This document shows positions 2,246-58,898 of a stretch of DNA of 64,000 nucleotides, in pieces. The DNA comes from Octopus sinensis (taxonomy: Eukaryota): NCBI RefSeq assembly GCF_006345805.1, contig NC_043014.1, forward strand, positions 16,678,001 to 16,742,000. Direction: 5' to 3'. The position numbers were made by a program, and so were the translations under genes. Position 1 is the stretch's first letter. Each line of letters starts with the position of its first letter. The notes beneath the pieces are model-generated. The model had not been told where the DNA came from, searched no databases, and was given only the letters and a program-made list of their open reading frames with translations.

Positions 2246-2620
2246 ACTAGCACTATGACCCAGCAACGCCGGGTCATAGTGCTAGTGCATGCATATACAG
2301 CTGCGTGCGTGTGCACATACACGTGAGTACTGTTCAAATCTCCGATCAATCACATACAGCTAGCTGACATTCAATTGACATATCAAGTTTCGGGCATTTT
2401 TATTGGGTTTTGGATAGAAAATTCACAAAAAAAGTCACTTCTATTGATTTTTTAATGGCTTTGCAGGATGACTGGGGAAATGTAAAGATGTGCACGACCA
2501 CCCTTGGACGGTTTTGAATGACCATAGAAAGTGCAAGCCCTCTAACTGAAAAATTGTGGGTTTGTATAAAGGATACACACACACACAGAAAGACATTTTG
2601 CCATTTATATATATAGAGAT
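2246..2620 (-). mobile_element. Non-autonomous Helitron with a 16-bp terminal palindrome
   Basis: On the minus strand it starts ATCTCTATATAT and ends in a hairpin plus CTAGT; second copy at 18729. Confidence 0.75.
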
Positions 2621-2804
2621 AATGATGATGATGATGATGATGGTGATAATGGTAATGATGATAGTGATAGATAATCAACTGATTAAAATAGAGCTAATCA
2701 GAGTTAATCACAAACAAATTATATTTTCATTGACGATGTATTTATGCTGAACAGAAAACTTTTTAAAATAACCCATGCAAAACATTAAAAGAAACTTTAC
2801 ATAC

Positions 2805-6534: not shown

Positions 6535-6876
6535 TTGCCAGAGCGGCTAACTGGCTTCCGTGCCGGTGGCATGTAGGAGGCACCATTAGAGCGAGATCGT
6601 TACCAGCATCGCCTTACTGGCACCTGTGCCATTGGCATGTGTACAAAGATTTGAACGAGGTCGTTGCCAGTACCGCCTGACTGGCCCCCGTACCGGTGGC
6701 ACGTAAAAGCACCCACTACATGCTCGGAGTGGTTGGCATTAGGAAGGGCATCCAGCTGTAGAAACTCTGTCAGATCAGATTGAAGCCTGGTGCAGCCATC
6801 TGGTTCACCACACCTCAGTCAAATCGTCCAACCCATGCTAGCATGGAAAGCGGACGTTAAACGATGATGATGATGA
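6535..6876 (+). mobile_element. 5'-truncated RTE 3' UTR (similar: 13470-13945 +, 23606-23975 -, 24740-24975 -, 33068-33357 -, 48012-48378 +, 58303-58588 +)
   Basis: ~60-bp modules, then cacccactacactctcggagtggttggcgttaggaaggg...catgctagcatggaaagcggacgttaaac(gat)n: the same terminus as the ORF-bearing RTE copies. Confidence 0.85.
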
Positions 6877-12683: not shown

Positions 12684-14106
12684 CTGCAGAAGACCAACTA
12701 AGTCAATGTCACTATTAGCACCTTTATAATTTACAAGTAGACGAATATTAATATAGCACAGAAATATTGACATATCATACATTTATATGTGTCGCCATGA
12801 TAGATTGTTAGCCACTACACACATTTTTTTCTCTCCTTGTTTTTTCTGTGTCCCTTTCTGTAGAAGAGCAAAGGCTTGAAATGTAAAAGACTTTTTCAAT
12901 TCCTGAGCGTTATACTAGTACATCTGTTCGTTTTGTACACCACCTGTCTTCGTCTTTTGTTTTTTTTCATGAACTCTCCCCACACATTTATATATATGGG
13001 TATGATATAGACAGGTAGCTTCTGCTATAGGCCCACCCCTCAGGCAGATCAAAGCCTTGTGAATGGATTTGGAAGATGGAAACTGAAAAAAAGCACATTG
13101 CGTGTGTTTGCATACATCAGCACTTGCTTTTGCAAATGTTCTGACACTCAAGTGTTGCTCTTGTCACTTCTGTCAATAATACATCGGCTTACTTGATGCC
13201 TTCAAAACCATGAGGAATAAGAGATTCTTTATTTGAAAAACAAGTAGTAATTAGCTTCAGGAAGGGCAAGCATCCAGCTGTAAAAAATGCCTATTATTTG
13301 TCTAACCCATGCTTGTTAGGAAAAATGGGGGCAAAACAAACACACAGAAGACATTAACATGATTTAGACACATGCTATAAATAAGGGCAGGGATTATCTT
13401 TTACAAACATGATCTAAGCTAAGGTACTGATTATCTATGCAAAGAGCACCATATGAGTGTAATTGTTTGACAGAGCGGCTAAGCAGCTTCCGTGCCGGTG
13501 TCACATAAAAGGCACCATTCGAGCGTGATCGTTACCAGCGTTGCCTTTCTGGCACTTGTGCCCGTGCTAGTAGGGTGCCAAGAGCACCATCCGAGCGTGA
13601 TCATTGCCAGAGCAGCCAACTGGCTTCCGCGCTGGTGGTACGTAAAAGGGCATCATTCAAGTGTGATCGTTACCAGTGTCACCTTACTGGCACCTGTGCT
13701 GGTGGCATGTGTAAAAAGATTCGAGCAAGGTCTTTGCCAGTACCGCCTGACTGGCCCCTGTGCTGGTGGCACGTAAAAAGCACCCACTACACTCATGGAG
13801 TGGTTGGCGTTAGGAAGGGCATCCAGCTGTAGAAACTCTGCCAGATCAAGATTGGAGCCTGGTGCAGCCATCTAGTTCGCCAGACCTCAGTCAAAATTGT
13901 CCAACCCATGCTAGCATGGAAAGCGGACGTTAAACGATGATGATGTACACATGGTACGACAATGGATAAAGATTATTTGTTTTCTGTGTATAGTGTACAT
14001 ACAGGGATAGGGTTAGCAATTTCATAGAAATAATAAAAAGAACGATGTTGAACAATTCTCACCAACCAACAACTACAAAATAATATTTTCAAAATTAGAA
14101 ATTTAC

Positions 14107-15623: not shown

Positions 15624-15941
15624 CTGAAACAAAGTAAAAATACCTACATTAAATATTGAAATAACAGCAACAATTTAATCTTCATTAAGCTCTGGAAAAC
15701 TGAGATGGTTGAGTGCATCATCGTTATAGTGGAGCTTCCATAAATATATTATATATGTATCAATATATATATATCATCATCATCTAACGTCTGTCTTCCA
15801 TGCTGGCATGGGTTGGACGTTTTGACAGGAGCCAACCAGATAGAAGACTACACCAGGCTATTGTGTCTGCTTTGGCAGGGTTTTTATGGCTGGGTGGCCT
15901 TCCTAACACCAACCACACTGTAGAGTGGACTGAATGCTTTT

Positions 15942-16247: not shown

Positions 16248-17058
16248 ACTGAGTGCTTTTACATGGCACCAGCACACGTGAGGTCAGTTTCGGCATAGTT
16301 TTTATAGCTGGATGCCCTTCCAAATGCCAACCATTTCACAGTGTGAACTGGATGCCTTTTACATAGCACCAGCACAACCTGCAAGACAAGGAATTTTGAG
16401 AGGGGACAGGGCAATAGAGGAGGTGATCTTGGGTCAGATGATGAAAGATTAGAGTGTGACCAAGAGACAGCGATGTAGAAACAGGTGTCTTGTTATAGAG
16501 GAGGTATATGGTTACCCAGCCAAGAGAAAGAGAGTGATAACAAGAAAGAGGAGAGAAACAGGTGTGCTCTTTGTCACCCTCTAACCTATCATTCTTACAC
16601 GAGTTCCCCTCCTCAAATGTCCCTGCCCCTCTCATAATTCCTTGTCTTGTGAGTTACTTGGTGACCCTGCCAGTATTGGTACCTTGTAAAAAGCATCCAG
16701 CTGTAAAACTCACGCCACAACTAACCTTGCCTGTGCTAGTGCCACATAAAAAGCACCAAGTCCAGTCTGCAGAGTGGTTGGTGTTAGGATTCTCTTTTTA
16801 TAAGAATCGTTAACTAATAAACAATTAACTGATAAACAATTTCACCAGTGATAACTTTAGCTATAATTCATTGTGGATTGATAAAAACACTATCAATAAC
16901 TTAATATGGCTGTTAGATTCTTATCTACAAAACTGATTTTATGGTTTGTTACAATGGATCTCTGCTCTACATCAGTTTGATAATTACTCGTTTTCGACTA
17001 AACAAAAATGGAGACACCTATCTCAGGAAACTTAAGCAAGAACTAACGGAATACTTAC

Positions 17059-17283
17059 AGTAGAACTGTTTGGTAGGTTTGTGTATTTCTGAGATTTGAT
17101 CTCGATATGGTTTCAACAACTGTTCACTCACAGCCTGAGCTACATCACCGTTTTTACTTATATTCACTCCAACACGATTAATGTGATCAAGTGGGTGTTG
17201 AGCCTCTTTAAAAATATTTTGGCACAAATAGCCATCACGACCACAGCTGAGGAGGATGTTGGGACTGTTTCTCCACTGAATAC
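17059..17283 (-). CDS. WDR24: WDR24 coding exon (last WD40 repeat)
   Basis: tttcag|GT ATT CAG TGG...TAC T|gtaagt. IQWRNSPNILLSCGRDGYLCQNIFKEAQHPLDHINRVGVNISKNGDVAQA vs human [41 protein letters not shown]. Confidence 0.94.
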
Positions 17284-17474
17284 CTGAAATCAAATGACGA
17301 CAATAGTAAGTTCAATATTCATAATAAAACTATTAAAAAAATACATTTGTGAGCAACTGTATTTTTATACACAGTTTTATACAAAATGTCTGAAAGTTTT
17401 TTGTTTTTTTTTAATCTATTTTTAAGATATAACTTTAAAATTACACTGTTCTTAAATTTCTTTATTAGAAATAC

Positions 17475-17975: not shown

Positions 17976-18041
17976 ATTTTTAAATACATTATTTAAAAAA
18001 ACGAAATGAAAATAATAGTGAAAATGTATTGATCTACATAC

Positions 18042-18240
18042 CAGAAGCCACATCTTTGTGTCTGTTAAAGGCAGCCAGGGGAATGTATGGTCGACGAATA
18101 TCCCAAATATTGACAGCAAAATCCACAAGGAGGGAACTGCTAGCTATAAGATATTTGTAGTCAGGTCGCCACTTACACCTAGCTACTGAGGCCATGGTAT
18201 GTACAATATGAACGACTTTCTTTGTAGGCATATCCCACAC
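18042..18240 (-). CDS. WDR24: WDR24 coding exon (WD40)
   Basis: aatcag|GTG TGG GAT...TCT G|gtatgt. VWDMPTKKVVHIVHTMASVARCKWRPDYKYLIASSSLLVDFAVNIWDIRRPYIPLAAFNRHKDVAS, strongly similar to human WDR24. Confidence 0.96.
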
Positions 18241-18728
18241 CTGATTTGGAAAACAAACACATAAACATATATGATACAAAAAATATCTCATAAAACAAAT
18301 TTAAAAACATTTATCAAAAGACGTTCTTTCCTTATCATCAAAAAGGTTGCATGGATATCTGTAACTCAAATACATCTCAACACCACATTCATAGCCACAA
18401 CTTTTATCTTTGAGCTATCTGGTCTAATTTTTTGAACGACAATTATATAATGAAATGTTTAAAGATGTTCACTACAGCAACAATACTTACTGTATAATAT
18501 ATTCTGCAAATGGGTTCAGAATGTTCTCTCTATAATAGATATATTCTCTATATAGTAACAATTCTAACTTTATGTCATAATATTTGGCTCCAGGTTGCTC
18601 TCAAGATAAGGAATAACAAATGGTTCATATTGCCACTGAACAAAACAACTATGTGTACTGAAGTAACATAAATGAGACTGAGTTTTGGTGACTTTTAATA
18701 CAATTGAGAGGTAGACTTTTAAAACACT

Positions 18729-19055
18729 ACTAGCACTATGACCCGGCGCTGCCAGATCATAGTGCTAGTGCATGCATATACAGCTGCATGCGTGCGCACA
18801 TACACGCGAGTACTGTCCAAATCTCCAACCAATCACATACAGCTAGCTGGCATTCAATTGGCGTATCAAGTTTCAGGTATTCTGATTGGGTCTTGGATAG
18901 AAAATTCACAAAAAAGTCACTTCTATTGATTTTTTAATGGCTTTGTGGGGTGACTGGGGAAATGTAAAGATGTGCACGACCACCCTTGGACGGTTTTGAA
19001 TGACCACAGAAAGTGCAAGCCCCCTAACTGAAAAATTGTGGATTTGTATAAAGGA
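18729..19055 (-). mobile_element. Helitron copy split by the RTE insertion; remainder at 22876-22917
   Basis: Colinear with 2246-2620 up to gtataaagga; the missing end (acacacacagacagacattttgccgtttatatatatagagat) resumes after the RTE (gat)n tail. Confidence 0.85.
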
Positions 19056-22000
19056 GGTGTGGAAACAAGGATTAGAATCGAAGGGCCTTAGAATCAACCT
19101 AGCCAAAACCAAAGTCCTAATAAGTAGGAAGGTAGATAAATCACAAACGCCTTCAGGTAGATGGCCCTGCTCGATCTGTAAAAAAGGTGTAGGTAGAAAC
19201 TCTATAAGATGCACCAAGTGTAAGCTATGGACACATAAGAGGTGCAGCAATGTCAAAGGAAGGCTAACTAGGAAAATAGTTTTTGTCTGTGGCAAATGCT
19301 CAGGAGCAATAAACACTGGAAATGTGCAGAGACCAACTTCTGCCACGTTCCAGGGAGACAAACTAGAAGTAGTTGATAGCTTCCGCTACCTAGGAGACCA
19401 AGTCAGTAGCGGGGGTGGGTGTGCTGAAAGTGTAACTGCTAGAGTAAGAATAGCCTGGGCAAAGTTTAGAGAGCTCTTACCCCTGCTGGTGACAAAAGGC
19501 CTCTCGCTCAGAGTAAAAGGCAGACTGTATGATGCATGTGTACGTACAGCCATGCTACATGGTAGTGAAACATGGGCCGTGACTGCTGAGGATATGCATA
19601 AGCTCGCAAGAAATGAAGCCAGTATGCTCCGATGGATGTGTAATGTCAGTGTTCATAATCGTCAGAGTGTAAGTTCCTTGAGAGAAAAGTTGAACCTAAG
19701 AAGCGTCAGTTGTGGTGTGCAAGAGAGACGGCTGCGCTGGTATGGTCATGTGACGAGAAAGGCTGAAGATAGTTGTGTGCAAAAGTGCTACACCCTAGCA
19801 GTTGAGGGAACCTGTGGAAGAGGTAGACCCAGGAAAACCTGGGACGAGGTGGTGAAGCACGACCTTCGAACTTTAGGTCTCACTAAGGAAATGTCTAGAG
19901 ACCGATACCTATGGAAGTATGCTGTGCGTGAGAAGACCCGGCAAGACTAGTCAGGCCATAACCCGTGGCCCCTACCTGGGACGTAGTCAGTCCACCTGTG
20001 CATACCTTCCTTCTTGTGACACTTATGAAGACCTGTTGAGGCAAGTGAAAATCAAATCAAAACAAATCAAAATAGATGAACATCAATGGAATTGTATCTT
20101 TGTGGTACCAGTGCCGGTGGCACACAAGAAAACCACCCGAACGTGGCCGTAGCCAGTACCGCATCGACTGGCCTCTGTGCTGTGGGCACAACAAACACCA
20201 TCCGATCGTGGCCGTTTGCCAGCCTCATCTGGCACCTGTGTCGGTGGCACATAAAAACACCATCCGAAGACCCGGAGACGTAGTCAGTCCACCTGTGCAT
20301 ACCTCCCTCTTATGACACTTGTGAAGACCTGTTGAGGCAAGTGTGTGACACTTGTGAAGACCTGTTGAGGCAGAGGCAAGTGTGTGACACTTTGTGAAGA
20401 CCTGTTGAGGCAGAGGCAAGTGTGTGACACTTGTGGAGACCTGTTGAGGCAAGTGTGTGACACGCGTGACACTTGTGAAGACCTGTTGAGGCAAGTGTGT
20501 GACACTTGTGAAGATCTGTTGAGGCAAGTGAAAATCAAAATCAAACCAAATCAAAATAGATGAACATCAATGGAATTTGTATCTTTGTGGTACCAGTACC
20601 GGTGGCACACAAGAAAACCATCCGAACGTGGCCGTAGCCAGTACCGCATCGACTGGCCTCCGTGCTGTGGGCACAACAAACACCATCCGATCGTGGCCGT
20701 TCGCCAGCCTCATCTGGCACCTGTGTCGGTGGCACATAAAAACACCATCCGAAGACCCGGCGACGTAGTCAGTCCACCTGTGCATACCTTCCTTCTTATG
20801 ACACTTGTGAAGACCTGGTGAGGCAAGTGTGTGACACTTGTGAAGACCTGTTGAGGCAGAGGCAAGTGTGTGACACTTGTGAAGACCTGTTGAGGCAGAG
20901 GCAAGTGTATGACACTTGTGAAGACCTGTTGAGGCAAGTGAAAATCAAACCAAATCAAAATAGATGAACATCAATGGAATTTGTATCTTTGTGGTACCAG
21001 TACCGGTGGCACACAAGAAAACCATCCGAACGTGGCCGTAGCCAGTACCGCATCGACTGGCCTCTGTGATGTGGGCACATAACAAACACCATCCGATCGT
21101 GGTGGCCCCTACCTGGGACGTAGTCAGTCCACCTGTGCATACCTTCCTTCTTGTGACACTTGTGAAGACCTGTTGAGGCAAGTGAAAATCAACAAATCAA
21201 AAAATCAAAACAAATCAAAATAGATGAACATCAATGGAATCTGTATCTCTGTGGTACCAGTGCCGGTGGCACACAAGAAAACCATCCGAACGTGGCTGTA
21301 GCCAGTACCGCATCGACTGGCCTCCGTGCTGTGGGCACATAACAAACGCCATCCGATCGTGGCCGTTCGCCAGCCTCATCTGGCACCTGTCCGAAGACCC
21401 GGCAAGACTAGTCAGGCCATAGCCCGTGGCCCTTTCCTGGGACGTAGTCAGTCCACCTGTGCATACCTTCCTTCTTATGACACTTGTGAAGACCTGTTGA
21501 GGCAAGTGCTAATCAAATCAAATGACACTTGTGAAGGCCTGTTGAGGCAAGTGATAATAATAATAATAATAATAATAATAATCATAATCAAATCAAATCA
21601 AAACAAATCAAAATAGATGAACATCAATGGAATCTGTATCTCTGTGGTACCAGTGCCGGTGGCACACAAGAAAACCATCCGAACGTGGCTGTAGCCAGTA
21701 CCGCATCGACTGGCCTCCGTGCTGTGGGCACATAACAAACGCCATCCGATCGTGGCCGTTCGCCAGCCTCATCTGGCACCTGTCCGAAGACCCGGCAAGA
21801 CTAGTCAGGCCATAGCCCGTGGCCCTTTCCTGGGACGTAGTCAGTCCACCTGTGCATACCTTCCTTCTTATGACACTTGTGAAGACCTGTTGAGGCAAGT
21901 GCTAATCAAATCAAATGACACTTGTGAAGGCCTGTTGAGGCAAGTGATAATAATAATAATAATAATAATAATAATCATAATCAAATCAAATCAAAACAAA

Positions 22001-22875
22001 TCAAAATAGATGAACATCAATGGAATTTGTATCTTTGTGGTACCAATGCCGGTGGCACACAAGAAAACCATCCGAACGTGGCAGTAGCCAGTACCACATC
22101 GACTGGCCTCCGTGCTGTGGGCACGTAACAAACACCATCCGATCGTGGCCGTTCGCCAGCCTCATCTGGCACCTGTGTTAGTGGCACATAAAAACACCAT
22201 CCAAAGACCCGGCAAGACTAGTCAGGCCATAACCCGTGGCCCCTACCTGGGACGTAGTCAGTCCACCTTCTTATGACACTTGTGAAGACCTGTTGAGGCA
22301 AGTATGTGACACTTGTGAAGACCTGTTGAGGCAAGTGTGTGACAGTTATGAAGACCTGTTGAGGCAAGTGAAAATCAAACCAAATCAAAATAGATGAACA
22401 TCAATGGAATTTGTATCTTTGTGGTACCAGTGCCGGTGGCACACAAGAAAACCATCCGAACGTGGCCGTAGCCAGTACCGCATCGACTGGCCTCCGTGCT
22501 GTAGGCATGTAACAAGCACCATCCGATCGTGGCCGTTCGCCAGCCTCATCTGGCACTTGTGTCGGTGGCACATAAAAACACCATCCGAGCGTGGCCGTCT
22601 GCCAGCCTCGTCTGGCACCTGTGTCGGTGGCACATAAAAAACACCATCCGAGCGTGGCCGTTCGCCAGCCTCGTCTGGCACCTGTGTCGGTGGCACATAA
22701 AATCACCCACTACACTCTCGGAGTGGTTGGCGTTAGGAAGGGCATCCAGCTGTAGAAACACTGCCAGATCTGACTGGCCTGGTGCAGCCTTCGGGCTCCC
22801 CAGACTCCAGTTGAACCGTCCAACCCATGCTAGCATGGAAAGCGGACGTTAAATGAGGATGATGATGATGATGAT
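19056..22875 (+). mobile_element. 5'-truncated RTE LINE (copy A): open RT C-terminus with PHD finger and tandem-array 3' UTR
   Basis: ORF to 19950: KGLRINLAKTKVL...FRYLG...ARVRIAWAKFREL...AMLHGSETW...RLRWYGHV...GRGRPRKTW. Then 7 tandem units, a unique terminus and (gat)n. Confidence 0.92.
19932..22702 (+). repeat. Tandem array A: 7 units of ~290-490 bp (base unit ~334 bp)
   Basis: Unit starts at 19932, 20266, 20751, ~21101, 21393, 21786 and 22203. Nested 28-35-bp and ~60-bp subrepeats plus (AATCA)n and (TAA)n. Confidence 0.92.
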
Positions 22876-24180
22876 ACACACACAGACAGACATTTTGCCG
22901 TTTATATATATAGAGATATACAAGGGATGACAACAGTGTAGAATCTCTCTCATTCCAAGGCCTTCAATACAATTTCTTTTGTGATGCAGTGATGTTACTT
23001 GAATAATATATATTTACCTGGTGCTGACATACATCACCAGGTAAATGCATGCAGGTAGAATATCTAATTATCTTGCTACAAGAGAAAACATCACTGAAGA
23101 AGTTAACCAAAAGTACTCTGAGATTTTAAGTGGTGAAGTTTTTCAGGTCAATAAATAATCTGCTCAGAAAGTGAAAAATAAAAGCAATATTTGATACATG
23201 AAATCAAGGCAGAGAAAAGTCGACCTGAATACTGAACCAACTAACATTTACTTACAAGTTGTTATTTACCTTGAATTGGGTCTTCAACTGAAGATCAATA
23301 TGTCCAACTTCAAATTGCCATGCTGCTCACCATGACTCTGGCTCCGGGAATTTTCATCAGTGAGGTTAACTCCTCTTTAAACACATTACTGAAAGGCCAT
23401 TAACTTGTACAGGTTCCCCCATCCTTTGACAGGATGGAAAACTAACTATGAAGTGCCAGAACTCCATATTAATTTTCAAGTAGTTAAAGTGACTTAATGA
23501 ACCACCAGTTCCATCAACTGGAAATAATTCACTAATTGCATTGAACGTTAACTGAAGAGGGTCTTCTGTGCAGACTGCCTTGTAGTTTCACCAAATGAAG
23601 ATCATATCATCATCATCATCGTTTAACGTCCATTTTCCATGCTAGCATGGGTTGGACGGTTCAACCAGGGTCTGGAAAGCCAGAAGGCTGCACCAGGCTC
23701 CAGTCTGAACTGGCAGTGTTTCTACAGTTGGATGCCCTTCCTAACGCCAACCACTCTGTGAGTGTAGTGAGTGCTTTTAACATGCCAGGGGAGGCTGGCA
23801 ACAGCCATGATCAGTTGATGCTTTTCACGTGCCACCGGCACAGAAGCCAGTCAAGGCAGGGCTGGCATCAGCCACGTTTGGATGGTGCTTTTTACATGCC
23901 ACTGGCACAGGTATCACATCTACAATTTCCATTTGATTTTTTGATGTTGATGTACCTGACTCGTCAAATGAAATTCTGAAGATCAATATGCCCAACTTCA
24001 TATCTACCATACTACTCCCCATAACTTCACTATGACTGGCTCTGGGATTTTTCATCATTGAGGTTAACCCCCTCTTTATACACACTACTGAAAGCCCATC
24101 GACTCATACAAGTTCCTCCACTCTTTGACAGGAAGAAAAACTAACATTTAAAGCATACACTATCAGACAACTTTACTTAC

Positions 24181-24312: not shown

Positions 24313-25253
24313 CTATTTGTTTGAAAGAAAAAAGAAAAACTGTAACGCTTCTGTTACCAAATTTCTGCTGAAATATTGAAATACATTGTCTTTGCTTCAT
24401 TTAAGTTTGAAAATAATAGAGAATTTATAGTAAGACAACTTTGTCACGATTAGGCTGGAGTTTGGAATATAAATTAACATAATCTTTTGATGGACACTTT
24501 TAACGTAGTTCACTTCAAAACAAGAAATTCGTATCATAGGACAAGAGGCTGATCTCAGTGAGGTTGGTAACAAAAATGTTACTTAGCAACAGATCCAGTA
24601 GTCAGGAATTAAAGATCAAAATTTAGTGAAGTTTAGAAATGGACAAGAATGTCAACTGAAGATAATTGCAGACAATTGAATGAAATGCTGTCAATATAAG
24701 ACGACAGACATCAAAGATAAACAGCCAGCAAACAAATCACCATCATCATCATCCTCATCGTTTAACGTCCGCTTTCCATGCTAGCATGCGTTGGACGTAT
24801 GACTGAGGGCTGGCGAACCAGATGGCTGCACCAGGCTCCAGTCTTGATCTGGTAGAGTTTCTACAGCTGGATGCCCTTCCTAACGCCAACCACTCCGAGA
24901 GTGTAGTAGGTGCTTTTACGTGCCACCGGCACAGGGGCCAGTCACGCTAGAATTGGCAATGACCACACTCAAATCTCAGTATAAATAACTCGTTTTAAAA
25001 ATACAATATTGTTATCATTGCCATCGCCACCATCATCATCATTTAGCATCTATTTTCTATGCTGGTACAGAGTGAATGGTTTGACAGAATCGGATGAGTT
25101 GGTGGGTGGGAGCATTGTGCTGCTTCAAGCATGATTTCTATGGACTATAATAGACTAATTAGTAACTTATTCTATTGGAAAAGTAAATTTCTCAACTGCT
25201 TGCAATAATCAAGAATCAAAGCAAAGTGTAATAAACAAAAAACTTTTAATGAC

Positions 25254-31221: not shown

Positions 31222-32470
31222 CATCATCATCATCATCATCGTTTAACGTCCATTTTCTATGTTGGCATGGGTTGGATTGTTTGACTGGGGACTGGCAAGC
31301 CAGAAGGCCTCACCAGGCTCCAATCTGATCTGGCAATGTTTCTACAGCTGGATGCCCTTCCTAACGCCAACCACTCTGAGAGGGTAGTGGGTGCTTTCTA
31401 TGTGCCACTGGCACAGGAGCCAGTCAGGTGGTACTGGCATCGGCCATGTTCGGATGATACTTTTTATGTGCTACCAACACAGAAGCCACTTGGGGCGGTG
31501 GGGGACATCGACCACGTTCGAATGGTGCTTTTTACATGTCACCGGCACAGGGAACCAGTCAGGCGGCACTGGCAACAACTCACGCATGAATGGTGTTTAT
31601 TGCATGCCACTAGCATGAGAGCCAGTCAGACAGCACTGGCATCGGCCACAACTAGAATTTCCATTTGATTGTGATTTGATTATTGATTTTGATTTTACTT
31701 GACTCAATAGGTTTCCTCGAGCACAGTATGCCACCCGACAATTCAAAGGTACTTTTTTAAATGGGCTGGTTATGCAACACTGGTATTGACTACGGCTGTG
31801 ATCTCACTTTATTTACTGGGTCTTCTCAAACACAGCATATCTCCAGAGGTCTCAGTCTTTTGTCATTGCCTCTATGAGGCCCAACGTTCAAAGGTCATGC
31901 TTCACCACCTCATCCCATGTCTTCCTGGGTCTCCCTCTTCCACAGGTTCCTTCCACTGTTAGAGAGTGACACTTCTTCACACAGCTCTTCTCATTCATAT
32001 GCAGCACATGACCATACCAGCATAGTCATCTCTTTTGCACACCACATCTGATGCTTCTTATGCGCAATATTTCTCTCAGGGCACTTACAGTTGTGTGTGC
32101 AGACTGAAATTGCACATCCAGCGGATCATACTAGCTTCATTTCTTTTGAGCCTATGCATGTCTTCAGCAGTCACAGCCCATGTTTCACTAGTGTATAGCA
32201 TGGCAGTTCGCACACATGCATCATACAATCTACCCTTCACTCTGAGCGAGAGGCCCTTTGTCACTAGTAGAAGTAGGAGCTTTCTGAACTTTGCCCAGGC
32301 TATTCTAGTGGCAATGCTCTGAGTATCCACCCCCACTACAGACTTGGTCACCTAGGTAGCAGAAGCTAACAACTACTTCTAGTTTCTCGCCCTGGCATGT
32401 GATGGAATCCATTTTCTGAGCATCTGTGGTGTTTATTGCCCCTGTGCATCTGTGGCACACAAAAGCTATC
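31222..32470 (-). mobile_element. Older decayed RTE copy with a single-unit 3' UTR
   Basis: ORF remnant ATRIAWAKFRKLL...RVKGRLYDACVRTAMLYTSETW, with frameshifts downstream. The 3' UTR has several ~60-bp modules but no 335-bp repetition. Confidence 0.85.
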
Positions 32471-33465
32471 TTCAGTGTGGTTAAGAAATTTGTTTCCTAA
32501 CTACATGATTTCAAGTTCAGCCTATTGTATGGTACTTTGGGCAAATGTCTTCTTCAGGATCAACCAAAGCTGTGCAGGTGGATAGTAGACAAAATCTGAA
32601 AGAAGCTTGTCGTGTGTGTGTGTGTCTCCTTGTCTTCACATTGTGTAGGGGTTGTGAAATGAGTGTCACTGTCATACAAGTGGTGCCCTCCATTTACAAT
32701 ATTCCATGAAAACATGCCTAACCATTGGGAAATATTAACCTATTTTGAAACGGGTAAGGGTTGGTAGTGAGAAGGACATCTAGTTGTAAAAAATCTGCCC
32801 CAACACATTCTATCTGACCCATGTAAGCATGAACAAGTGGATGCTAAAAGGATAATGGTGATGACTGATCAATCAGGACAGTTTTCTTTCAGTTTTCATC
32901 TATGAAATCCACTTTCAAAGCTTTGATCAGCCCAAAATTACAGAAGATACTTGCCCGAGATGCTGTACTGTGGGATTAAGCCCCAAAGCTATGTGTGGGG
33001 AATGAAATTCTTAACCATATAGACATGCCTTTACCTATAACCAGCAAACCAATTCTTATTTAATAGTACTCATCATCATCATCATTTAACATCCGCTTTC
33101 CATGCTAGCATGGGTTGGACAATTTTGATGGAGGGCTGACGAACCAGATGGCTGCACCAGACTTCAATCTTGATCTGGCAGAGTTTCCACAACTGGATGC
33201 CCTTCCTAACGCCAACCACTCTGAGAGTGTAGTGGGTGCATTTATGTGCCACCGGCACGGGGCCAGTCAGGCAGTACTGGCAACGACCTTGCTCGAATCT
33301 TTTACACATGCCACCGGCACAGGTGCTAGTAAGGCGACATTGGTAACGATCACACTATTCCACTGTACAAAAACTGAAGTGTGAGCTTAATTGAAAAACA
33401 TGTGAAATATTTGTAATACAATGAGAATATCATCCTCCAAATAGAAATAAAAGAATTTTTCCTAC

Positions 33466-38777: not shown

Positions 38778-40022
38778 GGTTAAACTAAAGCGTTACACCA
38801 TTCAAAGAAACAACAAAAAAATGTGTGTAATAGGTGTAAAACAACTTCCTCTGAACGAATATGAAAAAAAAATACGCGAAAGGGGGGTGGGGAGAGGCCT
38901 CGGAAAATTCACATCGGGAAGTTCCGAAAGCGTCTGAGGGGCTGACCCTGGCACCAAAACAAAAAAAAAATAGTGTAATATGTGTAAAACAACTTGCTCT
39001 AAACGAATATGACAAAAAAATGCGCACTCGCGAAAGAGGGGTGGGGGAGAGGCCTCGGAAAATTTATATCGGGAATTTCCGAAAGCGCCTGACCCGGGCA
39101 CAAAAACAAAAACAAAAATAGCGTAATAAGTGTAAAACAACTTGCTCTAAACGAATATGATGAAAAAAATGCGCGCTCGCGAAAGGGGGGTGGAGGAGAG
39201 GCTTCGGAAATTTCACATCTTCAGTCCACGGCCTTTAAACTAAGAAAAAATAGTGTAATTGGTGTAAAACTACTTGTTCTAAACGAGTATCAAGAACACA
39301 CACTCACACATGAATCATAAACTCTGTATTTTTGTACATATTTCGCAAAAAAAAATAAATAAAGAGAAGAAATTCTGGAAAAAGTGAAGAAATGTTGGGT
39401 CTCTGCCATGTGAATCAAAATACGTGTCAGAAACATCTTGAAATACTACAGAAATTATGTTACGAAAATGATAATGTATACATTATGCGCGAAAATACAA
39501 ACATCTTCCGATGTGGAAGGACTGTTCGCCTTCGAAGGCAAAGACCAACGCAATGTGGATATTCTATATCCCTATACAGCAACACATTTTTGGAGCAGAG
39601 TCAGATACCACCCTGTAAAGTCCTGTTATTTGTAAATTACTTCCTTACAGACTGTTGGTCGCATGCATTAGTCATGGAAATTTTGAACATTTCGTATCCG
39701 ACCTCAATTGATTGGCGATCCTTCTGCTCCGAGGTTTGTCAGCATTGGGTTGAAAATTACCAGGACCAAATCGGTGGACCAGGAGTTGAAGTAGAGATCG
39801 ATGAAACAGTTATTGTAAGAAGAAAATACAATCATGGAAGACTCACAAAAACTATCTGGCTTTTCGGTGGACTGAAGATGTGAAATTTCCGAAGCCTCTC
39901 CCCAACCCCTCTTTCGCGAGTGCACATTTTCTTTTTCATATTCGTTCAGAGGAAGTTGTTTTACACCTATTACACACATTTTTTTTTTTATTCTTTGAAT
40001 GGTGTAACGCTTTAGTTTAACC
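38778..40022 (+). mobile_element. Merlin (IS1595/ISXO2-like) DNA transposon, internally deleted
   Basis: TIR ggttaaactaaagcgttacacc at both ends; 8-bp TSD AAGTGTGG (38770-38777 and 40023-40030). ORF 39392-39883 with IDWRSFCSEVC...QIGGPGVEVEIDETVIVRRKYNHGR...WLFGG. Confidence 0.9.
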
Positions 40023-42166: not shown

Positions 42167-44495
42167 AGCTCGCAAGATGCGTAAGCTCGCAAGAAATGAA
42201 GCCTGTATGCTCCAATGGATGTGTAATGTCAGTGTTCATAATCGTCAGAGTGTAAGTACCTTGAGAGAAAAGTTGAACCTAAGAAGCGTCAGTTGTGATG
42301 TGCAAGAGAGACGGCTGCGCTGGTATGGTCATGTGACGAGAATGGCTGAAGATAGTTGTGTGCAAAAGTGCTACACCCTAGCAGTTGAGGGAACCTGTGG
42401 AAGAGGTAGACCCAGGAAAACCTGGGACGAGGTGGTGAAGCACGACCTTCGAACTTTAGGTCTCACCAAGGAAATGACTAGAGACCGAGACCTATGGAAG
42501 TATGCTGTGCATGAGAAGACCCGGCAAGACTAGTCAGGCCATAACCCGTGGCCCCTACCTGGGACGTAGTCAGTCCACCTGTGCATACCTTCCTTCTTGT
42601 GACACTTGTGAAGACCTGCTGAGGCAAGTGAAAATCAAAACAAATCAAAATAGATGAACATCAATGGAATTTGTATCTTCGTGGTATCAGTGCCGGTGGC
42701 ACACAAGAAAACCATCCGAACGTGGCCGTAGCCAGTACCGCATCGACTGGCCTCCGTACTGTGGGCACGTAACAAACACCATCCGATCGCGGCCGTTCGC
42801 CAGCTTCATCTGGCACCTGTGTCGGTGGCACATAAAAACACCATCCGAGCGTGGCCGTTCGCCAGCCTCGTCTGGCACCTGTGTCGGTGGCACATAAAAA
42901 TACCATCCGAAGACCCGGCAAGACTAGACAGGCCATAACCCGTGGCCCCTACCTGGGACGTAGTCAGTCCACCTGTGCATACCTTCCTTCTTGTGACACT
43001 TGTGAAGACCTGCTGAGGCAAGTGAAAATCAAAACAAATCAAAATAGATGAACATCAATGGAATTTGTATCTTCGTGGTATCAGTGCCGGTGGCACACAA
43101 GAAAACCATCCGAACGTGGCCGTAGCCAGTACCGCATCGACTGGCCTCCGTGCTGTGGGCACGTAACAAACACCATCCGATCGTGGCCGCTCGCCAGCCT
43201 CATCTGGCACCTGTGTCGGTGGCACATAAAAATACCATCCGAAGACCCGGCAAGACTAGACAGGCCATAACCCGTGGCCCCTACCTGGGACGTAGTCAGT
43301 CCACCTGTGCATACCTTCCTTCTTGTGACACTTGTGAAGACCTGTTGAGGCAAGTGAAAATCAAATCAAAACAAATCAAAACAAATCAAAATAGATGAAC
43401 ATCAATGGAATTTGTATCTTTGTGGTACCAGTGCCGGTGGCACACAAGAAAACCATCCGAACGTGGCCGCAGCCAGTAGCGCATCGACTGGCCTCCGTAC
43501 TGTGGGCACGTAACAAACACCATCCGATCGCGGCCGTTCGCCAGCTTCATCTGGCACCTGTGTCGGTGGCACATAAAAACACCATCCGAAGACCCGGCAA
43601 GACTAGTCAGGCCATAACCCGTGGCCCCTACCTGGGACGTAGTCAGTCCACCTGTGCATACCTTCCTTCTTGTGACACTTGTGAAGACCTGTTGAGGCAA
43701 GTGAAAATCAAATCAAATCAAATCAAAACAAATCAAAATAGATGAACATCAATGGAATTTGTATCTTTGTGGTACCAGTGCCGGTGGCACACAAGAAAAC
43801 CATCCGAACGTGGCCATAGCCAGTACCGCATTGACTGGCCTCCGTGCTGTGGGCACGTAACAAACACCATCCGATCGCGGCCGTTCGCCAGCTTCATCTG
43901 GCACCTGTGTCGGTGGCACATAAAAACACCATCCGAAGACCCGGCAAGACTAGTCAGGCCATAACCCGTGGCCCCTACCTGGGACGTAGTCAGTCCACCT
44001 GTGCATACCTTCCTTCTTGTGACACTTGTGAAGACCTGTTGAGGCAAGTGAAAATCAAAACAAATCAAAATAGATGAACATCAATGGAATTTGTATCTTT
44101 GTGGTATCAGTGCCGGTGGTACACAAGAAAACCATCCGAACGTGGCCGTAGCCAGTACCGCATCGACTGGCCTCCGTGGTGTGGGCACGTAACAAACACC
44201 ATCCGATCGTGGCTGTTCGCCAGCCTCATCTGGCACCTGTGTCGGTGGCACATAAAAACACCATCCGAGCGTGGCCGTTCGCCAGCCTCGTCTGGCACCT
44301 GTGTCGGTGGCACATAAAATCACCCACTACACTCTCGGAGTGGTTGGCGTTAGGAAGGGCATCCAGCTGTAGAAACACTGCCAGATCTGACTGGCCTGGT
44401 GCAGCCTTTGGGCTCCCCAGACCCCAGTTGAACCGTCCAACCCATGCTAGCATGGAAAGCGGACGTTAAATGATGATGATGATGATGATGATGAT
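42167..44495 (+). mobile_element. 5'-truncated RTE LINE (copy B) with tandem-array 3' UTR
   Basis: ORF to 42533, nearly identical to the C-terminus of copy A; 5 units, then the terminus and (gat)n. Confidence 0.92.
42515..44319 (+). repeat. Tandem array B: 5 units (394, 332, 347, 347, ~385 bp)
   Basis: Unit starts gaagacccgg at 42515, 42909, 43241, 43588 and 43935. Confidence 0.92.
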
Positions 44496-44505
44496 GTGTG
44501 TGCGC

Positions 44506-44870
44506 AGGAGTGGCTGTGTGGTAAGTAGCTTCCTTACCAACCACATCTTTCCGGGTTCAGCCCCACTGCGTGGCACCTTGGGCAAATGTCTTCTACTATA
44601 GCCTCAAGCCGACCAAAGCCTTGTGAGCGGATTTGGTAGACGGAAACTGAAAGAAGCCTGTCTATATATATATGTGTGTGTGTGTTTGCCTCCCCACCAT
44701 CGCTTCAACCAAGGTTGTGTGTTTACATCCCAGTAACTTAGCAGTTCGGCAAAAGAGACCGATATAATAAGTATTAGGCTTACAAAGAATAAGTCCTGGG
44801 ATTGATTTGCTCTATTAAAGGTGGTGCTCCAGCATGGCTGCAGTCAAATGACTGAAACAAGTAAAAGAAT
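44506..44870 (+). mobile_element. tRNA SINE (OK/Meta-like) abutting the RTE tail
   Basis: gcaggagtggctgtgtggtaagtagc...tgactgaaacaagtaaaag. Confidence 0.8.
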
Positions 44871-45930: not shown

Positions 45931-48519
45931 TATGTACTATATTTTAATGTGTATAAGGAACCCTTTGTCAGAAATTAGGTTAAAATATGAGAGTTTCTTA
46001 CACATGGATAGTATTGTAATCCCTTAGAAAACCTTTTTCCAAATTTTAACACCCCAAAATTAGGGTGTTCCTTATACACTTTAAAATATGGTGCATATAT
46101 GCACGTATTGGTATGTTGATGCAAACAGGGAAAAATAGAAGTCAAAATAAGAGTATATGTATATTGTTATTGATATTTAGCAGAAATAATAGCATGACTC
46201 AAAGTCAGATAGTTTTGTGAATTGGCTCTAACACACAAAACTCTGTCTTTGAGTCACTCCATTGCTTCTGCTAAATATCAATAAAACATATATATCTATA
46301 ATATAAATTGGACATGGGCGATCGTTGTATTCTTTCTTGTCTTGAGGTTCACAGCCAAACGGCAGGGTGGATTCGCGTGAAAAATGGCACACATGTGGGG
46401 ACAGGTGCATAGATTGGAATGCAGTTTGTATTTTTTTTCTAGCTTCCATACTTTCCAAGAAAATTGATTAAAACTTTTCTAATGGAATTTCCCTCTTTCT
46501 TCTGTCATTAAAACAACCAGTTGCTTAGGAGCTGTTTTCTGACGGGGTGGGGTCAGGAAATGTTCATATAGCAGGAGGCTCCAATTGAACCAGGGGACCC
46601 AAACTGATAAGGTTGACAAACGCTGTTATAGATTATGCCTAACTGAAAACAATCACAGCCACATCATCCAAACAAACCGGGCTTAGCTGCTAGTATATAT
46701 ATATATATATTCTGTTTATTGAATTCCACCCAATAATGGATGTGCAGCTAATTGTCTTTTTTGTTGCTGTTTGTTTTGAAGTATGCAACAGGCTGTAACT
46801 TATTTTTATTTCTCTCTTTCTAAGCTTTTCTTCTTGTGTGCTTTCAGCATACGGGTTTAAAATCTTTTAAAATCTGTTTTTTTTTTCAAAAAATAGGCAG
46901 TCTTTTGAATTTTGCATACAGAAAGTTAGAAATTGTGTTGATTGTAAGTGAAAGTTAGACAATCACTAACTCACTCTAGATACTTTACACTTCATTTTGG
47001 AAACAACTGTGTATTGAAGATTAATATAACATTTTAAATGTTTTATTTATAAGCTTCATAGGAGTGGCTGTGTATTTGAGAAAATTGCTTCCTAACCATG
47101 ATCTTGAATTCAGTCCTACTGTGCCGCACCTTGTGCAAGTGTCTTCTGCTATAGCCTCAGACTGACCAAAGTTTTGTGAGTGGTTTTGGTATATGGAAAT
47201 TGAAAGAAGCCCTTTGTGTGTGTGTGTGTATATATAAACATGTATGTGTGCCTCTGTTCTCCACTACTGCTTGACAGACAGTGTTGGTGTGTTTACATCC
47301 CCATGACCTAGCAGTTCTGTAAAGGGAACCAATGAAATAAATATTGGTGTTGATTTGTTTGACTAATGTTCTTGAAGGTAGTGTCCCAGCATCACTGCAT
47401 TCTTATGACTGAAACAAGTAAAAGATAAGATAGCCTAAAGAGATTTTGTTTACATTTTGAACACAGGGTGCAGGCGTGGCTGTGTGGTAAGTAGTCTGCT
47501 TCCCAACCACACAGTTTTGGGTTTAATTCCATTGTGTTACACTTTGAGCAAGTGTCTTCTATACTACTGGCAATGGGAAATATCTTCCTTGGAAACAGGT
47601 GAGGGTTGGTGACAGTCCGGGAATCTGGCTGTAGAAAATCAGCCTCTGAACTCAATTCGACCCATGCAAACATGGAAAAGTTGATATTAAAGCAATGAAG
47701 GTCATGGATTATCATGTCATTTAAATGTGGGTTGCTTTGGTCCCTGTGAAATTAATCTAATCATTAAAACATACCCCATTTAAGATAAATATCTTTTTCA
47801 TTTGTTTCAGTCATTTGACTCCGGCCATGCTGGAGCACCACCTTTGGGTCGAACAAATCGACCCCAGGACTTATTCTTTGTAAACCTAGTATTTATATTG
47901 GTCTCTTTTTGCCGGACCGCTAAGTTACAGGGACATAAACACATTAACATTTGTTATCAAGCTATGGTGGGGAGACAAAAACAGACACACAAACATATAT
48001 ATATATATATAGGTCTCCGTGCCGATGGCACGTTAAGCACACCATTCAAGTGTGATCGTTGCCGCATCGCCTTACCAGCACTTGTGCTGGTAGCATGTGA
48101 AACATTCGAGTGAGGTCGTCGCCAGTGCCGCTGGACTGGCTCCTGTGCAGGTGGCATGTAAAAAGCACCATTTCAGCGTGGCCGTTGCCAGTAGCACCAA
48201 ACTGGCCCTCGTGCCGGTGGCACGTAAAAGCACCCACTACACTCTCGGAGTGGTTGGCATTAGGAAGGGCATCCAGCTGTAGAAACTGCCAGATCAGATT
48301 GGAGTCTGGTTTGCCAGATCTCTGTCAAACCGTCCAAACCATGCTAGCATGGAAAGCGGACGTTAAATGATGATGATATAAAGTTTAGAAAGCTTCTACC
48401 TCTACTGGTGACAAAGGGTCTCTCACTCAGAGTGAAAGGTAGATTGTACGATGCATATGTGCAAACATGCCCTAGATTAATGAGTACTCTATACTTATAC
48501 TCCCCACTCTGCTTGTCTC

Positions 48520-56447: not shown

Positions 56448-58898
56448 CTGAAAAAAGATGTAATATTCAGAACAAAGGAGAAAACAAATTTTAAAAAAGT
56501 AAATGCTTAAAAGTACACAATAATTATATACATATTTTTCTACCCCCATCTTTGTCCATCTGTTACCTTCCTTCCACACTCTCTTGCAAACTAACTTACC
56601 TACCCCCATTACCCTGTCAAATCCTCTATCACTTCTCTTATATTCACCTTCCTGTAACTTGAGTTACATCTTCACCACTGTTTTCTTTCTTTTCCAACTG
56701 GGGTAGCCATGTATCTATTTCTTCTACAGTAAGACACCAGTTTCTATCTCTCTACATACTTTAAACTCTCATCACCTGGCATAAAGCCACCTCCCTCAAT
56801 ACTACTCCCACCTCGGTTGAAGGATTGGGGTCTTGTCTTGTGAGTTACTTGGTGAACCTACTAGTGCCCCGAAACAAAACACCCAGAACTCTGTAAAGTC
56901 ATCAGTGTTAGGAAAGGCATCTAGCCATAGGAACCATTCCAAAGTAGACATTTGAGCTTGGAATGGTCCTCTAGCTTGGCAGCTCCTGTCAAAATGTCCA
57001 ACACACACATACCAGCACAGAAAATGGATGTTAAATGGTGGTGGTGGTGGTGGTGGTAGTGATGATGATTATGGTGATGAGACATTTTACTTTCAATTCT
57101 TCATGTTAAGCATACCCCATCATTAGCGCTATCATTTAATATTCATTTTCTGATAATGACCCAGTTCTGAAATATAATGGTTTTTTGGACAAGGACAAGG
57201 AGAAATATTTAAGATCCTACTTTTAGCCTTTTCATAATAAATCTGATGAACATATTTGATGTAATATACCTTGATGTTATAGTACTGTATTCTCTCAAAT
57301 ACCTTCAGGCAGAAAAACAAAACTCAACTATGATAATCATCATCATTTTAACGTCTAATTTTCTGTGCTTGAATGGGCCAGACATGAAATTATTTGAAGC
57401 ACATATTAAATGGTTGGATGCTCTTTCTGTTGCTAAAAATTGTGTGTTTCCAAGTAAAGTGATGTTTTCCCCTAGTTCTTTGAGTACACACACCTGGACA
57501 TCACTGCTTATGGTGTAACAGTAGTGTTTCTTGACAACTATCACACAATGTCAAGACTAAAAGATACAAACACACACATACAAAGCTCATTCGTTTTACA
57601 TCCACTTTCCCCTGCTAATACAAGTTAAATATATTTAGGTGCTGTTTTACAGCTGGAAGCCCTTCCTGTCACTAACCTCTACTGCATTAATATTCCTTGC
57701 ACTTTCTGTTTTTCATATAAGGGATCTCTTATTTCATGCACCTTTGAAAGTACAAAATGATTGGGTGATTTGTTGACAAAAACACCATTTCTAGTTGGCA
57801 ACTTCCATAGGTGTAAAGATAAACAAGCACATCACACACGAACACACAGCATACAGTTAGATGTACAACTGCTATGGGTAAGTTCAGTGCTCCACATAAA
57901 GTATCATCATCCAGCTATTGTGCACTTGAACGTCCAATGCAGAGGTTGCAAATAAACAAGTGCTCCATCAGTTACAACAGCCTGCTCATGAAAATGTGCA
58001 AGTGTTTGAGCACACCACAGTAGTAGTTCTCACGGAGATTCAGCATGACACAGATTGTGACAAGGCTGGTCCTTTGAAATAAAGATATTACTCATTTTTG
58101 CCAGCTGAGAAAGTGTCTTGCTCAAGGACACAACACATCATGGGGAATCTAACTTACGAACTTATGATTGTGAGCAGAACACTCTAATCACTAAGTCACG
58201 CACCTTCACTCTGGTTGCAAATAATCACAAAGGTGAAGTATATGTATGGAAGAAAGGATATAAATTTGTTTAGCATAATTTCTCATATATATATATATAT
58301 ATCCGAACGTGGCCGTTGCCAGCGCCACCCCGACTGGCTTCCGTGCTGGTGACATGTAAAAAGCACCATCCAATCGTGGCCGTTGACAGCCTGGCCTGGC
58401 CTCCGTGCTGGTGGCACGTAAAAAGTACCCACTACACTCATGGAATGGTTGGCGTTAGGAAGGGCATCCAGCCATAGAAACATTGCCAGATCAGACTGGG
58501 CCTGGTGCAGCCTTCTGGCTTCCCAGACCCCAGTTGCACCGTCCAACCCATGCCAGCATGGAAAGCGGATGCTAAACGATGATGATGGGATAGATAGAGA
58601 GAGAGGGAGAAAGGAGAGAGAGACAGGCACAGACATGGCTGTGTGGTAAGAAGCTTGCTTCCCAACTACATGGTTCTGAGATCAGTGCCAGCGTGACACC
58701 TTGGACAAGTGTCTTCTACTATAGCCTCAGGCCAAGGAAAGCCTTGTGAGTGTATTTGGTAGATGAAAACTGAAAGAAGCCTGTCGTATGCATGTGTGTG
58801 TGTGTCTATGTCTCCCACCACCAATTGACAACTAGTGTTGATGTGTTTACATCCCTGTAACTTAGCAGTTTAGCAAAAAGAGACTGAGAAAACAAGTA

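Follow-up and report, generated by a model that had tools for sequence, protein, structure and literature searches.

In the SVA (SINE-VNTR-Alu) elements of hominids, which are non-autonomous, a tandem array forms a central VNTR, and in mouse L1 tandem monomers serve as functional 5' promoter units. More generally, it is well documented that tandem repeats in transposon UTRs travel with the element or seed satellites (PMC9659126, PMC12628747). The hypervariable 3' UTR tandem repeats of the Ty3/gypsy element Ogre are the source of the PisTR-A satellite, and HeT-A has 3' UTR-derived repeats; among LINEs, the chicken HinfI (SCR1) satellite stems from the CR1 3' UTR together with part of ORF2, and the common cetacean satellite from the 3' end of L1 (PMC9659126). 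Lepidopteran RTEs possess an extremely short 3' UTR (PMC2887409). For the octopus element RTE-2_OV, a 3' UTR of ~600 nt has been described as ‘mostly microsatellite’, and its specific amplification failed (Petrosino et al., PMC9115989).

Here we describe two copies, A and B, of an octopus LINE with a tandem array at its 3' end, found in a window of 64,000 nucleotides, i.e. the whole stretch of Octopus sinensis DNA that was analysed. As in SVA and with the mouse L1 monomers, a variable tandem array lies inside a non-LTR retrotransposon, is apparently copied together with the element and has a number of units that varies from copy to copy. Unlike in these systems, however, the array is located in the 3' UTR of an autonomous-type LINE, no function is evident, and the units include the stop codon and the last codons of the ORF. 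With Ogre and HeT-A, the octopus repeats share their origin in a retrotransposon 3' untranslated region and their variation among copies; yet Ogre is an LTR element, and whereas the Ogre and HeT-A repeats are able to seed satellites, no spread beyond the octopus LINE into a free-standing satellite was seen. In extending across the end of a LINE ORF into the 3' UTR, the octopus unit resembles the chicken HinfI and cetacean satellites, but the latter are large genomic satellites outside mobile copies, whereas the octopus arrays comprise 1.8-2.8 kb inside bounded insertions. Lepidopteran RTEs (PMC2887409) and RTE-2_OV (PMC9115989) likewise end in a microsatellite rather than poly(A) and are often present as 3' fragments truncated at the 5' end, but no higher-order array of ~335-bp units has been reported for RTE-2_OV, for which only ‘microsatellite’ is given (PMC9115989), and a literature search revealed no account of one in a cephalopod LINE. 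The octopus arrays are a further example of a known transposon habit and reveal no new mechanism.

Results and discussion

Two truncated LINE copies with tandem 3' ends

The features of both copies are listed in table 1. A sequence-only reading of this DNA had noticed that in copy A a segment is repeated seven times ahead of a single terminus and a GAT tail, and this arrangement was recovered when positions 19000-23400 were read again and when TRF was run on the whole window. TRF reported a period of 393 in copy A (21195-22560, score 1982) and of 347 in copy B (43026-44268, score 2248), along with nested 33/39-bp, 63-bp, 5-bp and 3-bp repeats. Each unit of copy A opens with the final 18 nt of the ORF and closes at the second or third 63-bp module, and unit B1 has retained one additional 63-bp module. 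The resulting 3' UTR has a length of 2.9 kb in copy A and 2.0 kb in copy B.

Table 1. Coordinates of copies A and B, their arrays and related features in the window.
Feature	Position	Strand	Remarks
Paralogous ‘empty site’	2246..2622	+	host-repeat copy uninterrupted across the copy A insertion point
Copy A, ORF remnant	19056..19950	+	5'-truncated LINE; C-terminal RT part with inserted PHD-like zinc finger
Copy A, array	19933..22587	+	7 tandem units A1-A7, 292-485 bp
Unit A1	19933-20266		
Unit A2	20267-20751		
Unit A3	20752-21101		
Unit A4	21102-21393		
Unit A5	21394-21786		
Unit A6	21787-22203		
Unit A7	22204-22587		
33/39-bp subrepeat array in A2	20313..20526	+	about 6-7 copies; TRF and comparison of unit middles
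Shorter 33/39-bp subrepeat arrays	20797-20940 (A3); 22274-22370 (A7)		
Perfect 393-bp tandem duplication, copy A	21195..21980	+	21195-21587 = 21588-21980; TRF period 393
63-bp modules, last unit to terminus of copy A	22422..22702	+	4.4 copies; TRF
Copy A, unique 158-bp 3' terminus	22703..22860	+	conserved predicted hairpins
Copy A, (GAT)6 tail	22858..22875	+	insertion end at 22874/22875
Older copy, same LINE family	31235..32473	-	~73% identity, single unit
Copy B, ORF remnant	42167..42533	+	truncation ~520 nt deeper into the ORF than in copy A
Copy B, array	42516..44267	+	5 tandem units, 332-394 bp; join identical to copy A
Copy B, unit starts	B1 42516, B2 42910, B3 43242, B4 43589, B5 43936		
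Copy B, tail	44184..44495	+	modules 44184-44319; terminus 44320-44477; (GAT)8 44472-44495

Neither copy is a full LINE; both are 5'-truncated fragments. Copy A itself retains only the C-terminal part of the RT, shows a PHD-like match (Pfam) in its ORF remnant and ends in KTRQD, followed by a TAG stop at 19948-19950. The ‘316-aa ORF’ does not belong entirely to the LINE, since LINE homology starts at 19056, not with the ATG at 19000, and this ATG and the first 56 nt represent flanking repeat.

The 327 bp 5' of copy A are a different dispersed repeat with a paralogue at 2246-2573. This paralogue reads through the insertion point as …TATAAAGGA/TACACAC… (also given as …TATAAAGGA/TACACACAC…; the slash marks the insertion point), and the joined flanks of copy A (18729-19055 plus 22875-22918) are collinear with 2246-2622 at ~93% identity. 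Because this empty site brackets copy A, the latter is a single discrete insertion of 3,820 bp at 19056-22875, without target-site duplication, and all seven units lie within the boundaries of the retrotransposed sequence. Copy B (42167-44495 overall) is flanked by (TG/TA)n and a SINE-like element, and its 5' join includes a short duplication of GCTCGCAAGA. The older copy gave one collinear BLAST alignment (reference positions 273-1478), in line with the single unit that had been attributed to it.

A shared join and nested variation

Units in both copies are connected by the same join, CATCCGA/AGACCCGG (the slash marks the point of joining). A search of the window with CATCCGAAGACCCGG, allowing at most one mismatch, gave seven matches, all seven of them within A or B, and none in 100 shuffles; a 30-mer spanning the join contains ACACCATCCGAAGACCCGGCAAGACTAG. 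The matches lie at 20261, 20746 and 22198 in copy A (the last one with one mismatch) and at 42904, 43236, 43583 and 43930 in copy B, which upholds the earlier observation that B carries the junction of A. Two further joins in copy A (21391 and 21784) are identical except that they lack 24 bp. That the units rejoin at a short microhomology also stands, but with respect to present-day modules (CCGAG) it consists of GA, i.e. 2 nt, and the GAA originally proposed would apply only to a donor module of the CCGAA type.

Within this common framework, the units vary at several levels, much as the first reading had it: ~38 bp are absent from each of A2 and A3, A3 and A4 are connected by a microhomology deletion through CGTGGCC, and units differ in their (AAATC)n and (TAA)n microsatellites as well as in the number of a subrepeat of 33-39 bp (TGACACTTGTGAAGACCTGTTGAGGCAAGTG, with a 7-bp inverted repeat), which is present in one to seven copies per unit. 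At their 3' ends, the units contain two or three diverged 63-bp modules each, and the same module type precedes every terminus. In sum, this is a clean, bounded LINE example of a 3' UTR with nesting at the microsatellite, 33-bp, 63-bp and ~335-bp levels.

Superimposed on this pattern is the 393-bp tandem duplication in copy A, the halves of which show no mismatch in 391 aligned bases; its register is offset from the canonical join, and each half includes a (TAA)n run. Such perfection suggests a very recent event, either an unequal exchange or slippage in place or a duplication made during assembly. The latter touches on the question of whether the arrays as a whole might be artefacts, composed of mis-joined reads from dispersed single-unit copies or of a collapsed or expanded repeat, and the perfect duplication does resemble those made by assemblers. 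However, the join sequence is absent from single-unit copies and so must exist in real DNA, 11 of the 12 units can be told apart by substitutions and indels, and two loci independently exhibit one architecture with clean insertion boundaries. We therefore regard an artefactual origin of the arrays as most improbable.

With respect to RNA structure, no Rfam match was found for units or tail, their folds were no more stable than those of shuffles (z about -0.1), and long inverted repeats were not detected in the units. A ribozyme or other structured RNA in the units was rejected on the grounds of the missing Rfam matches and shuffle-level folds.

Independent insertions from a probable multi-unit source

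Copies A and B differ in their 5' truncation points, in both flanks and in the length of their GAT tails, and A has a paralogous empty site, because of which they go back to two independent events of target-primed reverse transcription. The possibility that B is a segmental duplication of A was rejected, since flanks and truncation points differ, as was an origin of the units by insertion of one copy into another, since the units are devoid of the terminus and the GAT tail. Moreover, copy B has none of the A-specific deletions or expansions, while copy A reaches further 5' than B, so neither can have served as template for its counterpart. With 97.7% identity outside the array, A and B are the window's only young copies, and both are multi-unit.

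The join is idiosyncratic and unlikely to have arisen twice. Independent insertions that share one join point to a source element which already carried at least two units, would have been mobile and would have retrotransposed at least twice. The repeat block thus probably travelled with the element. This vindicates part of the proposal that the array is a mobile VNTR, namely the multi-unit 3' UTR in the source, which is required by the shared join in independent insertions; the source RNA may have carried as few as two units, with expansion following later, as the unit variants are copy-specific and none was found that is common to particular A and B units. The same array architecture is present in the independent insertions with different unit numbers, seven in A and five in B, in a sample of two copies; these are the only junction-bearing copies known and lie 22 kb apart in one window.

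Alternatively, the reverse transcriptase could generate such arrays anew at each retrotransposition by repeated template switching, in which case the identical join would be recurrent rather than inherited. Non-LTR reverse transcriptases such as that of R2 are well known to jump between templates, and both the short GA microhomology at the join and the small, template-switch-like duplication at the 5' end of B would fit. Yet copying from one template would not yield units that differ from each other by 2-6% within one copy and have different deletions and subrepeat numbers; furthermore, a microhomology of 2 nt does not specify a unique site, and such joins are absent from the single-unit relatives. 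Recurrent formation of the same join thus seems highly unlikely to us.

Unit divergence and the age of the arrays

Of the 556 sites compared outside the array, 13 (2.3%) distinguish A from B. Substitution divergence between units amounts to 1.8-3.5% within B (on average about 2.6%), 1.3-6.1% within A and 2.5-3.2% between A1 and the units of B. A comparison of 16/262 with 13/556 sites gave p = 0.013 in Fisher's test, with small counts and with a CpG density that is somewhat higher in the units than in the flanks, which is a caveat for comparing rates. Units that were duplicated only after insertion would be expected to have diverged by roughly the A-B distance at most. Unit divergence that equals or exceeds the distance between A and B outside the array suggests that most units are probably older than the insertions, although this is based on few sites and on units of somewhat raised CpG density.

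At the same time, adjacent units have variants in common (A2/A3, A4/A5, A5/A6, B1/B2 and B2/B3), and these neighbour-shared variants, together with the shifted register of the 393-bp duplication, indicate unequal exchange or slippage. As regards the earlier suggestion that the element may seed satellite-like arrays, this duplication is the sole in-place change observed. A maximum-likelihood tree of the units, in which an O. vulgaris unit served as the root, is star-like and groups the units of each copy into weak clusters; with this outgroup and the weak support of its branches, the tree did not resolve the order of duplications.

Could the VNTR then be mostly local? A source with only two units and a single join might have been inserted twice, with the five- and seven-unit arrays growing separately after insertion by unequal sister-chromatid exchange or slippage. 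This would agree with the confinement of every unit variant to one copy, the sharing of variants between neighbours, the weak clusters into which the units of A and those of B fall separately, and the perfection of the 393-bp duplication in A, which implies that it is very recent. It is hard to reconcile, however, with unit divergence (up to 6.1% in A and ~2.6% on average in B) that is at least as high as the 2.3% between A and B outside the array, and for this reason we consider predominantly local growth possible but rather unlikely.

Relatives and affiliation of the LINE

An exact look-up of the window ORF found it not on record. Homologues of the ORF remnant are RVT_1+PHD proteins of O. 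vulgaris (90% identity over half of the query) and O. bimaculoides, with more distant ones in cnidarians and bivalves. At the nucleotide level, an O. vulgaris copy (L001, 10401-11817) exhibits 88-90% identity and a metagenome contig (L003) 89%, and both have a single unit. A distant relative (L002, 67% amino acid identity) features a 540-bp 3' UTR with 52-bp modules (2.8 copies), the same terminus and (GAT)7. The 3' UTR in single-unit relatives comprises about 550 bp (11264-11817 in L001). All relatives have retained 52-63-bp modules, terminus and GAT tail but are single-unit, so these three features are ancestral to the family, whereas the ~335-bp higher-order unit is specific to the young subfamily represented by A and B.

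That the reverse transcriptase domain is of the non-LTR type is supported by the O. vulgaris relative L001, which matches Pfam RVT_1 at 2e-18. All copies in the window and in L001-L004 are 5'-truncated, and the APE region was recovered from none of them. The C-terminal motif of the LINE presumably resembles that of BovB. Simple (GAT)n repeats rather than poly(A) form the 3' ends of A, B and 18 related copies. The LINE is probably of the APE type and RTE-like. The GAT tail is compatible with RTE-like elements, but an ancestral 3' UTR of ~550 bp is at odds with the very short one of lepidopteran RTEs. The octopus LINE and RTE-2_OV could belong to one family, with RTE-2_OV compared by description only; its sequence is absent from the supplements of PMC9115989, and its unpublished status has also been noted elsewhere (PMC13282606).

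Further copies of the junction were sought in several collections. A junction-spanning ORF had no match among 5.8 billion proteins, and an antisense junction ORF, compared with 1.84 billion representatives, retrieved only a single-unit copy and an unrelated module-repeat protein. Neither JGI metagenomes nor GTDB genome contigs contained the join, the terminus was absent from the viral, metagenome and genome collections scanned, and no junction-bearing copy was present in 41 kb of O. vulgaris DNA (two loci). The collections searched hold very little cephalopod DNA, so these results have only slight bearing on abundance in the source genome. Within the window, free-standing satellite arrays were not found: outside A and B there are only modules and termini, and unit-like sequence is confined to the two copies.

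Origin and implications of the array

In the account we favour, and in which we have moderate confidence, A and B would be independent, 5'-truncated and dead-on-arrival insertions of the youngest subfamily of an octopus LINE whose RT contains an inserted PHD-like finger. The ancestral 3' UTR of this family would have consisted of ~550 bp with one 33-bp hairpin-forming element, (AAATC)n and three to five diverged 52-63-bp modules, and would have ended in the conserved 158-bp terminus and the (GAT)n tail. Within the young subfamily, a founding event at the GA microhomology of a source element would have connected an internal module to the last 18 nt of the ORF and duplicated roughly 335 bp, either by a template switch of the RT or by a slip during DNA replication or repair. 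The tandem segment would then have behaved as a minisatellite, gaining, losing and recombining units by unequal exchange or slippage, with nested subrepeats and microsatellites expanding within the units. The multi-unit 3' UTR would have been copied to new sites by target-primed reverse transcription, with the array continuing to change after insertion. The array itself, the common join, the independence of the insertions and the limits of A are shown by the sequence, while the founding mechanism, the unit number in the source RNA and neutrality are components of this account that we infer; a function would not be necessary to explain the array.

On this reading, inherited and in-place changes are both visible in a single case. 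If the subfamily is abundant, it would be a dispersed source of minisatellite variation and of satellite seeds in octopus genomes, and it would also pose practical difficulties for the annotation of repeats, the building of consensus sequences, PCR and the short-read assembly of octopus LINEs, among them the RTE elements for which activity in the octopus brain has been proposed. A more far-reaching idea, which we regard as quite doubtful, is that the youngest and possibly active subfamily changes its 3' UTR unit number at every retrotransposition as the RT switches between units. If true, the LINE would represent a retrotransposition-coupled generator of tandem-repeat variation, which would spread thousands of length-variable minisatellite loci (the window has two in 64 kb) and would be a likely cause of octopus LINE 3' ends resisting assembly and PCR.

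The conserved terminus

The terminus occurs 12 times in the window, five times in L001 and twice in L004, and is also present in L002 and L003. Most of these occurrences are tails of 170-390 bp without a common head. An identity of these short copies as SINEs was rejected, as they lack a common head, tRNA genes and Rfam matches; they are 5'-truncated LINE tails. It is likely that only the terminal region is required for recognition by the RT. An alignment of 20 termini revealed strongly conserved predicted hairpins with almost no covariation, and a role of these hairpins in RT recognition is plausible; one of them, CGTCC…CCATGC-TA-GCATGG…GGACG, is predicted about 10 nt 5' of the tail.

Dispersal of the LINE 3' end

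Besides the two 5'-truncated insertions with multi-unit 3' UTR arrays (copies A and B), the window holds eight more short copies of the LINE 3' end, each 170–390 bp long and consisting of modules, terminus and GAT tail, which brings the density of the terminus to about 1 per 5 kb. These copies share 74–89% identity with copy A. A SINE identity was considered for them and rejected, because a common head was looked for among the copies in the window and none was found; they are thus truncated LINE tails. One of them ends in (GAT)3 and adjoins an ORF fragment of the same LINE family, and this stretch (48136–48460) is a case of the family inserted into itself, whether nested or adjacent.

Features around the LINE copies (window coordinates unless a locus is named)
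Feature	Position	Remark
Dispersed repeat, unclassified	2246–2573; 18729–19055	host of insertion A
ORF pieces, exon-like	17021–17293; 18037–18291	minus strand
PHD-like zinc finger in LINE RT	19162–19300; L001 10001–10882	L001, O. vulgaris locus
Short 3'-end copies 1–4	6550–6868; 13579–13941; 15776–15941; 23615–23900	
Short 3'-end copies 5–8	24755–24941; 33078–33329; 48136–48374; 58301–58583	
LINE-family ORF fragment	48380–48460	84% to ORF nt 462–542
SINE-like element	44497–44660	immediately downstream of copy B
148-bp x 2.8 tandem repeat	38808–39219	85% matches; unrelated to LINE
184-bp x 7 tandem array	L004 16635–17923	93% matches; O. vulgaris OX597824.1

Surroundings of copies A and B

The dispersed repeat that hosts insertion A is at least 330 bp long, with 92% identity between its two window copies, and an imperfect (GAT)n run (2618–2662) lies downstream of the first. 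Two nearby ORF pieces, the second with a weak Pfam match to a beta-propeller model, look like exons of a minus-strand WD/beta-propeller host gene; in that case copy A would lie within one of its introns, in antisense orientation. The SINE-like element flanking copy B bears GCAGGAGTGGCTGTGTGGTAAGTAGC… together with GGTTCAGCCCCACTGCG; ARAGORN called no tRNA in it.

Domain layout of the reverse transcriptase

In the LINE RT, the PHD-like zinc finger is an insertion that separates the catalytic core from the C-terminal 'thumb' region. Precomputed domain annotation gives the RVT_1+PHD arrangement in the majority of homologues, which range from octopus to cnidarians and bivalves, so the layout is an old and widespread feature of this LINE lineage.

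Other tandem arrays

The 184-bp unit at the second O. vulgaris locus (L004) includes a tRNA B-box-like GTTCAAATTCCGCC, and the array looks SINE-derived, apparently a further case in octopus of a transposable element turning into a tandem repeat. In the representative protein library, the predicted 'protein' P0134 (221 aa), matched with the antisense junction ORF of the array, is a long run of CHRHR-type ~63-bp modules read antisense, so module arrays far longer than those in the window do exist somewhere in public data; the array behind P0134 shows a higher-order period.
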